Below are positions 17,214 through 64,000 of a stretch of 64,000 nt of DNA, piece after piece. A program made the position numbers and the translations under genes. The DNA is from Zygnema circumcarinatum SAG 698-1b (lineage: Eukaryota > Plantae > Zygnematophyceae), in assembly GCA_037447605.1 (NCBI GenBank), contig CM074807.1, positions 3,608,829 to 3,672,828 of the forward strand. Reading direction: 5' to 3'. How positions within the stretch are numbered: the stretch's first letter is position 1; each line of letters opens with the position of its first letter. The notes beneath the pieces were generated by a model that searched no databases, was not told where the DNA came from, and saw nothing but the letters and a program-made list of their open reading frames with translations.

Positions 17214-20200
17214 TTAGCAGTTCCATGCGTGACCTGACAGAACGGGACGGTCTTTCCATGTGAGCTGCAACCCCTCATCAACTGCTGCCACATCCAACCT
17301 CTCATGGAACTGCTTCACAGTTCGCCGCAGACTCTTCACAGTTTCAGGGTTCAGCGGCCGCGCTCTAAAACCGCAACTCCTCATTCTCATCTGCCACATA
17401 TGCAGCTTCTCCAACCTCTGAACCCTGTCCAGCCCTTCTGTAGCGATAGCATGAATAATTTCTCGCCCCTTAATCTTCTCCTCCAACACTCGTCGGGGGA
17501 TGCTTGCGCTGGAGACTATCTTGTCGAATAAGTCAAAAATCGTCATATAGTGATCCAACGCTTGTCTGAACCGTGCCAAAAAGAAGGGAGAGACTTGATC
17601 TGTGTCGTAGTCACAGATTACCACCAAATCGGGTTTCCACAACCGCAGTTTCTGCACATTTCATGCCAACAGCTCTCACACGTCAGGCATTCCTCTGCGA
17701 AACGAAGGAGGAGAAGGAAAAGAGGAAAGAAAGAGAGTGACAGAGAGAGAGAGAGAGAGAGAGAGAGAGAGAGAGAGAGAGAGAGAGAGAGAGAGAGAGA
17801 GAGAGAGAGGACACCTCTCACACTGCAACACTTCGTATTACCTTCAAAAATGCGTCTCTAGGGTTCGATCGCATGACCGTACTCTCCGGTAGCTGCTGTA
17901 ATCTCATAGCGCTCGCAACCGCCCATGTCTCTCCCTCCCTCAGCCGGAGATCGGAGAGTTTCAAATCTTCCAGTCTGCTTACCACTACGGAATATTCACA
18001 CTGCACTCCCGCTTCTGCCGCTGCCATCATCACCTCCATTTTCACAATGCTTGCCGGCATTTTAGGACCTGCTCCCCAGGGCATTCCTCTTGGAGCTTCT
18101 ACTCCTGTAATTCGCAGGAAAGGAGGGCGGCCGGGTCTCTCTGAGAGGCTACGTATGAAGGGGCCCCATTGGCCACTCCACATAGAGAGGTCTACAATGT
18201 GAATGCTGTCTCTGTTTCCTACCACCTCCAACATGGAGTCGTTTATGAAGTCCATGTTGAAAATCAGCAGAGGGAGCCTGTTGGAGATGTCTTCCAAAGC
18301 TTGCATCATCTGTGGAGCAAACGGACAGAGAGAAAGTAGAACAGCAGGAAATTAGGGTTCGCATCCTTCTGCCTGACAGGAGCTTTACAGCGATGACAGG
18401 AAGATTGATGAACTCTTCCTGGCGAGGTAAGCATCAGAATAGTCTAGAATTTGGGCTTAATGCGACAAAAACAGATGCCTGAATTTGGTGAAAGAGCAAA
18501 GCAAGACGTTTTAAAGGCTGTTGGGTCAAAATGCAATGAGAGACAGGCCGGAGGACGAGCACAAAGAGAGAGAGAGAGGAGAGAGAGAGAGAGAGAGAGA
18601 GAGAGAGAGAGAGAGAGAGAGAGAGAGAGAGAGAGAGAGAGAGAGAGAGAGAGAGAGAGAGAGAGAGAGAGAGAGAGAGAGAGAGAGAGAGAGAGAGAGA
18701 GAGAGAGAGAGAGAGAGAGAGAGAGAGAGAGAGCAGAGAGAGAGAGAGAGAGAGAGAGAGAGAGAGAGAGAGAGAGAGAGAGAGAGAGAGAGAGAGAGAG
18801 AGAGAGAGAGAGAGAGAGAGAGAGAGAGAGCAGAGAGAGAGAGAGAGAGAGAGAGAGAGAGAGAGAGAGAGAGAGAGAGAGAGAGAGAGAGAGGAGAGAG
18901 AGAGAGAGAGAGAGAGAAAGAGAGAGAGAGAGAGAGCGAGAGAGAGAGAGAGAGCGAGAGAGAGAGAGAGAAAGAGAGAGAGAGAGAGAAAGAGAGAGAG
19001 GGAGAGAGAGAGAGAGAGAGAGAGAGAGAAAGAGAGAGAGAGAAAGAGAGAGCGAGAGAGAGAGAGCGAGAGAGAGAGAGAGAAAGAGAGAGAGAGAGAG
19101 GGGGGGGGGAGAGAGAGAGAGAGCAGCCGCATACTGAAGGACTCATGTCCAGAGGTCGAAGGTAGTCTTCAGCCGTGCTGCCCTTCTCCCTCGCCTCAAG
19201 CCCTTTGAGGAAGTAGTAAACAATTCGTTGCATCATACGGCCTGAGCACGATGCTTCCCCCTCCAAAAGACTTCTCAGAAACCCTGCTCGTTCCTGAAGA
19301 AACCAACCACCCAAATCTCACCATCAGAATCCACTTTCGGATGAAAAAATCCGTTGCTGAAGCAGTCAAGCAGCTCGCATTCGCAAACAAGATTCGCCTT
19401 CCAAAAAGCAAATGTTTTCTGCATTGACACACACCGAAGCGAAACCCAAAAGCTCCCAAAAAAGGCTTTCCTTCCTGAATACAATTCGAAAGTTGGGTTA
19501 GCAGCAGAATGACCCACCAGGTCCCCTGTTGCAATATCTTCTGCAAGGGCAAGCAGGCGACCTTTCAGAACAACATCGGAACTCTCAAGCCTTCTTTTAA
19601 CCAGAGATTGGTCCCCTCTTGGATCGGGACTTTTTCCTTCTGCCGACCGTTCGTCACCGGCCACTGCTTCTTCCGCTCTCCTCCTTCCAGCTACAAGCAT
19701 GATTCTCCGTACTGCTCGTTCAGCAGAAGGGAGAGGCATAGCTGAAGCTGAAACTGAAGCTGAAGTTGCCCCAAAGTTGGCCTTCTCTCTCGCTTTTGAT
19801 CGAAGAGCAGCAGCAAGTCTATCAGACAGGTCGGCAGGGCGACTCCCTTTCGTGGAAGGGATTGCTTTTCCGGTTGAAAATAGACCTCTTCGATCGTTCT
19901 TTACAAAGTTCTTTGCAAAGTCAAACCTCGCCCTTTGCTTGCGGTTTCCCGATTGGCATTCATCTGTGTATAGCCGACACACAAGGCAGGTGCAGACCTT
20001 ATCACAGGGCACGATCCTTATGTTATTCGATGTCGCAATTGAAGAGTGCTGCCTTACTGAAACAGGCATGTTCTTTACGACACACTCGTCTGTTCCCGAG
20101 TTCAAAGCTGATTCTGAAGGAAACATACGAACCTTCAACAGAGAAGTCTCACCTGTTTCTAACTCTGAAAACGAGAAAACATAACTGGTGTTCTGTTTCC

Positions 20201-61359: not shown

Positions 61360-64000
61360 ATGGCGGCGTGGGAGTGGTATTCTCGGAACGACGGTACGGA
61401 TTCCGGTCCTCTCTACATCGAAGAACCGGCGCCGCTCTTCTTCCGCGACAGGCTCGGCCCGCCATGGGAGCCGGCCGCCGCCTCCTCAGGGCTCTTCAGG
61501 TCAGTGGAGGGCGTGGCTCTGCCTCGTGGCATTCTCAGATATGGCAATGCGTTCTCTTGTTTTGCCGCCTCTGCCTGAGAGAGTTGCTTACATTGCTTTG
61601 CCTTCTCGGGCGGGTGGTGGTAATCAGCGGGCCGAGCTCTGACTTGTCGGCTCTGGATGACACGTGGCCTTCTCCTCCTCTCCTCCTCCCTCCCTCTCCT
61701 CCTCTTTCGCCTCCTTTCTGGGTCGACTCGTTCCCTGAGGTCCCGGACGTAAGCCTTGTCCTACTGGAGTCTCTCCAAACAAACCCTAATTTTCTAGAAC
61801 CCAACCCTGATTCAGCACAGCCAGACAATGGCTCCTCGGAGGCTCTTCTTAGACAGCAGGAGGAGGCTGCTGCTTTCTTTGATGAGTCACATGGCTCCTC
61901 AGATATTGGAGGGATTCCAGAGTGCCATATGGCAGGAGAAGGCAACGCAAGCGGGAGTTTGGGGGCTCTGTTTAAGCAAGCAGTTGTCATGGACCTCTCG
62001 TTGCCAAGTTGCAGCAGGTCACCATTGGATGGTTGTTCTGCTTCAGAAAGAGGGGAAGTTTCAGACACCGCTGAGAAAGAGGTTCCGTTGGATGCAACGT
62101 CAGACTGGCTACATCCTCAACTTCACGGTGTTGGAATTTCCCCAACATTGGCTCCCTCTCGATCTTCCTCTGCAGTAGCTGCAGAGCTTCGAAGGCAATA
62201 TGTCGATGGATTGGAGTTTGAATCAAGGAGGAGTGCGGCTTCGAACAGCTCCGTCGTTGCCGAACGAGACTCCTCTCTCTCTCCTTCTGGTTTAGAACAG
62301 CTCCTTTCTTGCCCCCTGATTGTGAGAGCGCCATCTTCGACAGAGGGAGCATTCAGTGAGGGGTCGCGGAGTAGTGATATTGAAGCTTCTCAGCAGCCGG
62401 CTAAAAGATGCGACTGTGCAGAATGTCAGGTTTCAGGATTGAATCTTCAGCATGCTGACTGGGCAGCCATGTCCAGCGTTTACAATGCGAATTCAACACT
62501 ACATTCCTCTTCTTCCACAAGTCATAAAAGTGAGCAATCGGATGATTCAGAAAAGCATCCTCAGCAGTTACTTGCAGTAGCTTCTAGCCGCGAGACGCGG
62601 CCCAAAGACATGTCGAACCGGCTCGCAGCTCTTGTTGAGAAGATAACTAAACCCCCACTTGAGTCAAATTCAGGTGTGGTGGTTCAGTTTCGGGGTTCAG
62701 GAAGGAAGAATAGTGACGAGTCTGAAAGGCAAAAGGAAGCTGAAGGAGGACCCTTCCGAATTGCCTCAGAAGTGGACGCATGGATGAAGGCAAAGCAGGA
62801 GGTGTTGACCTCAAGGAGAGAGGGAACAGTCCAATCCCTTCAAGTTCGCAGAGCTTGCAGGAAGCTGAGGAGACGGCGGCCGGCCATGGATGGAACTTTG
62901 ACTCCTTCGGCTGCGACTAAAGTAGTCATGAATCCCTTTATGGAGCTCGCATTTCCTCCTGCGGCTGTAGTAGACAGTTTCAAAATTGTAGACAAGAGAA
63001 AGGGAGGGGACAGTACGCTTCGACAGCATCTTCTCTCGTATGCAGAGGCTGTGGCCACACACGATGAGGTATTAAACGCTGTTTAGATGTCTAAGCGTTT
63101 CGTGATTGGTTTGGGGGCTGCTGCATCAATCTTCCAAAAAGGGCTTATGAAGTTGCCGACATGAACCCTGTTCTCTGGCTAACAGACAGTTTGTATGCGG
63201 TGTTTGTAGGCTCGCATGAGATTCTTGTTGAAGCTGCTTAAAAAGGAGACTTCGTCACGAGGAACTACGATGCAGCGTTTGGCCTTCTTCTTCATGGAAG
63301 CTCTCACTGCCCGGGTAGCCAACACGGGAGCAGAAATATTCTTTAGCAAGTTGAATGTGCAGGCAGAGGTAAGCAGCATGCCCCCTTAACCCCCTGACCA
63401 TGCAGAAGGAGTACACTTTTCGCACGTCTCACATTCTCTCCTTCATCTCCATCCCTTCATTTCATCATCTTCACTCCCACCTTTGACGCACAGCCCCCTC
63501 TCTAAGCCCCTTCTCCATCCCCTCTACGAAAAGCTGGTTGCTTATTTCTATCCTTAACAACTGTGTGCAGGATATCGCTTTCGCTTTAGAAGCGGGAGCC
63601 TCCTGCACTCCGTACGTCCGACTCGCCTTTGAAGCCGCCAACGCTTCCATAGTTGACTCTGTGAGGGGAGAGAGGGCAGTTCACGTTGTCGATCTCGGAA
63701 TGTGGCAGGGGGGGCAGTTTGCCTCCATTCTCCGCCAGCTTGCAGCTCAGCCGGGAGGGCCCCCCAGTGTGCATCTGACATGTGTCGATGCTGCATGGAA
63801 TGCGAACCCCCTGAAGGAAGCGATGACAACTCGTCCGGCTGTGATTGGTAGAGATCTCACAAAGTTGGCAGCAAGTTTGGGGATTCCATTTGAGTTCAGT
63901 GTGGTGAAGACGCAGCTGGAAGAGCTTCAGCCGGAGATGATAAGGAGGGAGGCGGGGGAGGTGGTGGTGGTGACCAGCGCTATGAGATTGTCTTATCTTT
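61360..64000 (+). CDS. GRAS family transcription factor (paralogue 4), truncated by the window end
   Basis: Exon 1 at 61360-61499 (phase 2) joins 61628 in frame; exon 2 ends RQHLLSYAEAVATHDE. Then MQRLAFFFMEALTARV and TPYVRLAFEAAN..VHVVDLGMWQGGQF..GGPPSVHLT..SAMRLSYL, running off the window. Confidence 0.92.

Follow-up and report, generated by a model that had tools for sequence, protein, structure and literature searches.

Within a 64,000-nucleotide stretch of contig CM074807.1 from the alga Zygnema circumcarinatum SAG 698-1b (assembly GCA_037447605.1, positions 3,608,829 to 3,672,828 of the forward strand; hereafter the window), we found four genes of the GRAS family (G1, G2, G3 and G4), three of which encode, ahead of the GRAS domain, a cysteine cluster, CxCxxC, followed by a predicted helix motif, RPxD[LIM]SxRLAA. 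This motif pair, which is real, conserved and apparently undescribed, distinguishes a group of GRAS proteins from algae. The GRAS family is among the clearest gene-family gains common to Zygnematophyceae and land plants, and the disordered N-termini of land-plant GRAS proteins carry signal-receiving motifs, of which DELLA is the classic case. Family membership was assigned by Pfam PF03514, which covers the downstream exons of G1, G2 and G3 at 87-257 bits (the Pfam gathering cut-off is 27), and for the G4 exon by similarity to P0001, a related protein that itself carries PF03514. The genes, exons and motifs, in window positions, are the following.

1569-4226, minus strand: G1, a GRAS gene, with an N-terminal exon at 3321-4226 and GRAS exons downstream (Pfam PF03514, tblastn)
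3708-3740, minus strand: degenerate helix motif of G1, KPIDLKSRLKA; no CxCxxC in this gene
~17223-20618, minus strand: G2 gene
17223-18309, minus strand: GRAS-domain exons of G2 (PF03514, E 3.9e-29; tblastn with P0001)
19518-20615, minus strand: N-terminal exon of G2, 366 codons, ending ...AEDIATGDL; 0.98-1.00 of its sampled words occur in RNA-type runs
19809-19841, minus strand: helix motif of G2, RPADLSDRLAA
19977-19994, minus strand: cysteine cluster of G2, CTCLVC, with an extra Cys 4 residues before and another 7 residues after
56008-60228, plus strand: G3 gene
56008-56123, plus strand: exon 1 of G3 (MAAMETRLLGAELLDMDRFLSPLD...), joined to 56960; an RNA contig has a loose end at 56088-56117
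56960-58562, plus strand: exon 2 of G3, a long disordered N-terminal region ending AEAVATDDQ (mismatch-free RNA contigs; GT..AG joint 58562/58920)
57882-57899, plus strand: cysteine cluster of G3, CSCSDC, with a His 4 residues upstream
58071-58103, plus strand: helix motif of G3, RPADISDRLAA; the helix predicted by AlphaFold2 (AF2) spans residues 83-101 of the model
58431-58457, plus strand: third island of G3, PDPLADLVL, a predicted short helix, with a G2 counterpart at 19602-19628 (minus strand)
58920-59078, 59185-59661 and 59785-60228, plus strand: GRAS-domain exons of G3 (spliced RNA contigs; PF03514, E 3.1e-76)
61360-61499, plus strand: exon 1 of G4 (MAAWEWYS...), RNA joint 61499/61628, GT..AG
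61628-63068, plus strand: exon 2 of G4, the N-terminal region, ending AEAVATHDE
62409-62426, plus strand: cysteine cluster of G4, CDCAEC; position -4 is neither His nor Cys
62598-62630, plus strand: helix motif of G4, RPKDMSNRLAA
63583-63999, plus strand: GRAS-domain exon of G4, 52.5% identical to the P0001 GRAS domain (tblastn) and cut by the window end

Both motifs lie in frame within long N-terminal open reading frames (ORFs) or exons in all three paralogues, as a sequence-only reading of this DNA had proposed, and its coordinates were right within one base (CTCLVC, at 19977-19994, had been given as 19978-19995). The distance between the motifs, put there at 45-57 residues, measured 45 residues in G2 and 57 in both G3 and G4, and G1 does keep only the helix remnant. 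When these three proteins were compared with P0001 and with P0002, a second relative from outside the window, all three cysteines were invariant in 5/5 proteins, as were R, P, D, S, R, L, A and A of the helix motif, and the cluster took the form Cys-x-Cys-x-x-Cys followed by Gln-x-Ser-x-Leu. Three to four residues upstream of the cluster stands a His in G3, P0001 and P0002 and a Cys in G2 (4/5 proteins), and neither in G4.

Splicing and expression are seen for both G3 and G4. When contigs of four RNA-type runs were mapped to the region 56900-62899, they placed GT..AG joints at 58562/58920, 59078/59185, 59661/59785 and 61499/61628 with 0 mismatches, and mismatch-free contigs cover G3 from position 56984 in exon 2 through the exons that follow, as well as G4 up to 62899. 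The spliced model of G3 is a clean ORF of 932 amino acids (aa); G4 starts at 61360 (plus strand) and runs past the window end.

Ahead of the GRAS domain, no stretch is better conserved than these two motifs. Among 11-residue windows of the five-sequence alignment, the helix motif was the best conserved (3.89), above the start of the GRAS domain (3.24), and the cysteine cluster scored 3.17, with a background mean of 0.34. When each N-terminal region was shuffled, C.C..C arose in 0.0001 to 0.006 of shuffles per protein. Thus, since shuffles rarely give C.C..C and the window scores are far over background, chance does not account for the pair. GRAS-domain blocks are 42% identical between G2 and G3, 36% between G2 and G4 and 55% between G3 and G4, which is approximately their distance to land-plant GRAS proteins; because these domains are only 36-55% identical, the paralogues are old and the pair is not a leftover of a recent duplication. 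Synonymous codons vary freely at nearly every motif position, and because third codon positions vary in this way, it is the peptide that is under selection and not an element at the RNA or DNA level.

The pair was also found in relatives. An exhaustive profile search with the N-terminal region, run over 1.84 billion protein representatives, recovered only P0001 and P0002 as carriers (a match to P0003, a bacterial repeat protein, was rejected as spurious), and a word-index search with residues 300-545 of G3 recovered P0001 only. P0001, a full-length GRAS protein of 945 aa that carries CSCGDC and RPADISDRLAA, derives from the transcriptome assemblies of four runs; because its GC content at third codon positions (GC3) is 35% compared with 60% in G3, a different source organism is probable. 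P0002, which carries CHCADC and RPLDMSARLAA, is the ORF of a first exon on a scaffold from a metagenome. On that scaffold (L005:2094-2470), a phase-0 intron follows right after ATDDQ, and the second exon encodes GRAS leucine-rich region I. Since this intron is at the same place as in G3, the exon plan is older than these species. The sequence-only reading had made its case depend on the motifs being retained in relatives, and both P0001 and P0002 carry the pair.

Outside these carriers, the searches were negative. No land-plant protein with this N-terminal architecture was recovered by either the word-index or the profile search over the 1.84 billion representatives, and the cysteine cluster and helix motif occur in none of the land-plant (LISCL/PAT1-type) GRAS proteins that we fetched. 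P0005, the nearest GRAS-domain homologue found in Spirogloea, has a short N-terminus that lacks the cysteine cluster as well as the helix motif. Degenerate patterns derived from AEAVAT and RPxDxSxRLA were used to scan metagenomes twice; of the 178 and 77 matches to the patterns, 0 were confirmed. Pfam searches of all N-terminal regions at E <= 10 gave no relevant match, and neither motif is covered by a Pfam family; a sequence profile search of the PDB gave as its sole match a chance one to a glycyl-tRNA ligase (E = 1), and a feature search of the ESM Atlas gave sub-threshold GRAS clusters only (0.68-0.76), which are uninformative. These absences are weak evidence, since the coverage of Zygnematophyceae in these databases is uncertain. 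In the GRAS literature searched, the motif pair is undescribed, in keeping with the sequence-only reading, which had failed to recognise it from described GRAS subfamilies.

We also examined where the GRAS domains belong in the family. Their best matches were algal, followed by LISCL (SCL14/SCL30) and PAT1 (SCL21/CIGR1) proteins at 32-36% identity (E 1e-63 to 1e-49), and 0/39 of the matches was a DELLA protein. In a tree with only two land-plant subfamilies (LISCL and PAT1), no DELLA rows and no outgroup, G1-G4, P0001, P0004 and the Spirogloea protein P0005 were split from LISCL and PAT1 with 100/99 support. Published trees place algal GRAS proteins in a monophyletic clade outside all land-plant subfamilies (10.1101/398883). 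The alga-specific GRAS clade is that of Hernandez-Garcia et al. (2019).

AlphaFold2 was run on the motif region alone and, with a shallow alignment (A8), on the motif region together with the GRAS domain. The motif region alone gave a mean predicted local distance difference test score (pLDDT) of 52.7. Two isolated helices were predicted, one that begins within CxCxxC and one at D-I-S-D-R-L, as well as a short one at PDPLADLVL; the sole confident helix was that where the GRAS domain starts. When this domain was included, it reached pLDDT 80-90 and the motifs ~46-54, again with helices in otherwise low-confidence sequence. Structure prediction, which the sequence-only reading had suggested, thus yielded helices at both motifs but no confident fold. 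The N-terminal sequence around the motif helices is, in these models, apparently disordered, and in composition, with abundant Ser, Gly, Ala, Glu and Pro and a net charge of -10 to -27, it is what one expects of a disordered region. Projected on a helix, the hydrophobic residues conserved at positions 1, 5, 8, 9 and 12 after the Asp would share one face, and Pro-x-Asp would form a helix N-cap.

The N-termini are not otherwise unalignable, contrary to the sequence-only reading; four further islands are common to the paralogues. At the extreme N-terminus is EFDxxLxxLD / WEW. An island of the form LLPPxPP...FxDxFxDLP lies at 57078-57134 in G3 and at 61683-61745 in G4 (both plus strand) and is followed by acidic residues (in G3, FADDFMDLPSLEEEIAGFVE); it is a more typical candidate for an acidic/hydrophobic activation domain than the RPxDLS helix. 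A basic patch reads RKPGKSGRPKK in G3 (58356-58388, plus strand) and RKPGRSGRPRK in P0001, has Arg-rich counterparts in G4 (62847-62882) and G2, and is likely a nuclear localisation signal, or AT-hook-like (GRP core). The PDPxxDLxL island lies ~30 residues ahead of the GRAS domain. We also note that in the long ORF of G2 the first in-frame ATG does not come before residue 102, and yet WEW is kept (20574-20618, minus strand), the same motif with which G4 opens (MAAWEW). G2 may really begin in an upstream exon that has gone unrecognised.

Between the GRAS gene pairs lie unrelated genes, one of which encodes RING-H2 and von Willebrand A (vWA) domains (28791-32342, plus strand; Pfam zf-RING and VWA). 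Two assembly gaps (28896-28905 and 31507-31516) fall in or beside this RING-vWA gene, in Pro/Ser-rich low-complexity sequence, and its reading frame across the gaps is not trustworthy. The gaps have no bearing on the motif finding, since the nearest motifs are 8.9 kb and 26 kb away from them; the motif-bearing exons are free of N. Introns of G2 (18434-19165) and G3 (58592-58870) are filled by long (CT)n/(GA)n microsatellites, which yield spurious ORFs of >200 aa (SLSLSL or RERERE) on both strands; the one in G3 is skipped as an intron by the RNA contigs. In the G3 intron at 59662-59784, contigs rich in AAACCCT-like, telomere-type repeats pile up at 59726-59758, with word depth of up to ~970 compared with ~270 for the gene, which suggests a dispersed short repeat.

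We consider it somewhat better than even (a probability of roughly 0.6) that the motif pair represents short recognition elements, under selection in the largely disordered N-terminal region of an alga-specific GRAS branch, and not DELLA remnants. On this reading, RPxD[LIM]SxRLAA[ILA][VL] would be an N-capped amphipathic helix, capped by Pro-x-Asp and with its hydrophobic residues on one face, and its LAA[IL]V, which fits the pattern hydrophobic-x-x-hydrophobic-hydrophobic, would fold on a binding partner such as a co-regulator. The Cys-x-Cys-x-x-Cys at the start of the second predicted helix would be a putative small metal-binding (Zn/Cu) or thiol-redox element that sets or gates the helix. 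Together, the two motifs would allow this GRAS clade to receive a signal or a partner through its N-terminus, in parallel with DELLA, LISCL and other land-plant subfamilies that do so with their own, different motifs.

One part of this proposal is much more tentative, namely that the three cysteines and the frequent upstream His or Cys might form a metal- or redox-sensing switch over the neighbouring docking helices, which we think rather doubtful. Zinc knuckles and the HxxxCxxC of zinc-binding anti-sigma factors are examples of compact sites in which His and Cys bind metal or serve redox where a helix starts. The arrangement here, His/Cys, three residues, then C-x-C-x-x-C, its last two Cys flanking the point where a helix is predicted to begin, resembles such sites, a likeness that we offer as a lead only; it differs from them in that there is no Pfam match, the spacing is not known from any family and G4 lacks the fourth ligand.

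Several observations weigh against recognition elements of this kind. As to partner, metal and redox, we infer the mechanism wholly. AlphaFold2 confidence at both motifs is only ~45-60. The absence of an upstream His or Cys in G4 means that a four-ligand site within one chain is not universal, and an acidic activation helix would not usually have two invariant Arg residues. The cysteine cluster is lost in G1 and both motifs are absent from the Spirogloea protein P0005, so the motifs are dispensable in some family members. Finally, the restriction to few genes may reflect poor database coverage of Zygnematophyceae.

We considered the alternatives that involve DELLA with a comparison set of 15 real DELLA N-domain fragments (PF12041), fetched with a short bait sequence. 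Their alignment shows NPSDLSxWxxxM[IL]S after VHYNP, in agreement with the sequence-only reading. When the algal motifs were compared with these fragments by hhalign, RPaDmSdRLAAlV was placed on NPSDLstWlesMis with a probability of 0.2-0.4% (E 0.14-0.3). As its top local alignment, hhalign picked the exact register that the sequence-only reading had proposed from the spacing of the DELLA helix, but at a probability of only 0.2-0.4%.

The alternative that survives best is that the helix is a functional analogue, but not a homologue, of DELLA helix D, that is, a hydrophobic-x-x-hydrophobic-hydrophobic transactivation motif that recruits a KIX-domain coactivator such as MED15. The activation motif of DELLA helix D, which is deeply conserved, binds the KIX domain of MED15 (PMC11087773), hhalign aligns the P, D, S, L and all five hydrophobic residues with NPSDLSxWLxxM[IL]SE[IL], and LAA[IL]V fits the required pattern in 5/6 proteins. 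However, the alignment is not significant (0.2-0.4%), the algal motif has two invariant Arg residues in place of the Trp and acidic context, G2 has LAAAL, and the acidic island FxDDFMDLPxLEEE, which lies closer to the N-terminus, looks more like a typical activation domain. We regard a helix D analogue as possible, although unlikely.

Still less likely is that the motifs fold back on the GRAS domain of the same protein and act as a clamp that inhibits or stabilises it. Tight packing on some surface is indeed suggested by the small residues (Ala-Ala), which are invariant, but the presence of the GRAS domain did not raise AlphaFold2 confidence at the motifs above ~46-54, and the models show no sign of intramolecular docking on that domain, weak evidence in both cases given the shallow alignment.

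The idea that the helix is an evolutionary precursor, and thus a true homologue, of the DELLA/TVHYNP module is very improbable. In its favour there is only the short register match, P-x-D-L-S-x-x-L-x-x-hydrophobic-hydrophobic. PF12041, the Pfam DELLA domain, matched none of the N-terminal regions at E <= 10, and the PDB profile search contained no DELLA chain at E <= 10. Nor did we find the PF12041 domain with DELLA, LExLE and VHYNP that characterises the DELLA subfamily: these elements have no conserved counterpart, and regular-expression searches matched nothing beyond a DELL in G3, which is not conserved, and a single LE.LE in G1. The literal D-E-L-L of G3 (57213-57224, plus strand) occurs in SFIDELLTPG, and P0001 has VDNFL at the matching place; we rejected it as a DELLA motif and attribute it to coincidence, since it is not kept in P0001. 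The GRAS domains also match LISCL and PAT1 best, not DELLA, and published trees put algal GRAS proteins outside all land-plant subfamilies, with DELLA found nowhere outside land plants (10.1101/398883; 10.1101/835561). The precursor idea fails because there is no significant profile similarity to the DELLA N-domain, the very outcome that the sequence-only reading had said would count against it.

What the two helices have in common is the Pro-x-Asp-Leu-Ser helix start and the hydrophobic periodicity. Compared with DELLA helix D (NPSDLSxWLxxMLSEL, after VHYNP), however, the match is indistinguishable from chance, the algal motif has Arg for Trp, DELLA, LExLE and VHYNP are missing, and the GRAS domains here appear to fall in a separate clade, that of algae. 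These comparisons thus do not support homology with the DELLA N-domain, and the P-x-D-L-S start and hydrophobic spacing may reflect a common helix architecture.

Least credible of all is that the similarity has no function and was left by recent tandem duplication, or that it reflects a nucleotide-level element, for instance a target site of small RNAs, because, although the genes are neighbours within one 64-kb window, their GRAS domains have diverged to 36-55% identity, the motif flanks are near background, the motifs recur in two genes from other sources, and third codon positions differ throughout both motifs, so that the varying synonymous sites rule out the nucleotide-level element.

Recognition elements in a disordered region are a familiar feature of the family. 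According to reviews, disordered GRAS N-termini hold subfamily-specific recognition motifs (PMC4436894), and the frame that the sequence-only reading chose agrees with this. Like the molecular recognition features (MoRFs) of land-plant GRAS proteins (PMC4436894), the algal motifs occur in a long disordered N-terminal region before the GRAS domain, as branch-specific conserved islands of predicted helix. In contrast to those MoRFs, the motif sequences differ from the ones tested, and their profiles match neither the LISCL motif nor the DELLA domain. Homology with the LISCL N-terminal motif, an idea that arose from a D-Phi-S-D resemblance, was rejected at an hhalign probability of 0.1%; the LISCL arrangement (...L.YIS.MLMEE... 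then ALQAAEKS) was not found (hhalign of A4 against A10, probability 0.1%). LISCL and PAT1 proteins are the best land-plant matches of the GRAS domain, but the 100/99 branch separates the algal sequences from them in a limited tree, and their N-terminal motifs are unrelated.

Very little is known of what algal GRAS proteins sense or bind. The comparison with DELLA removes a tempting link to the origin of the DELLA domain. If the three-cysteine switch proved true, it would provide an input route of its own, separate from the hormone input through DELLA-GID1 that land plants evolved later. The motif pair provides a concrete, mutable handle on the interaction partners of algal GRAS regulators, and it lets one ask if N-terminal signal input predates land plants.

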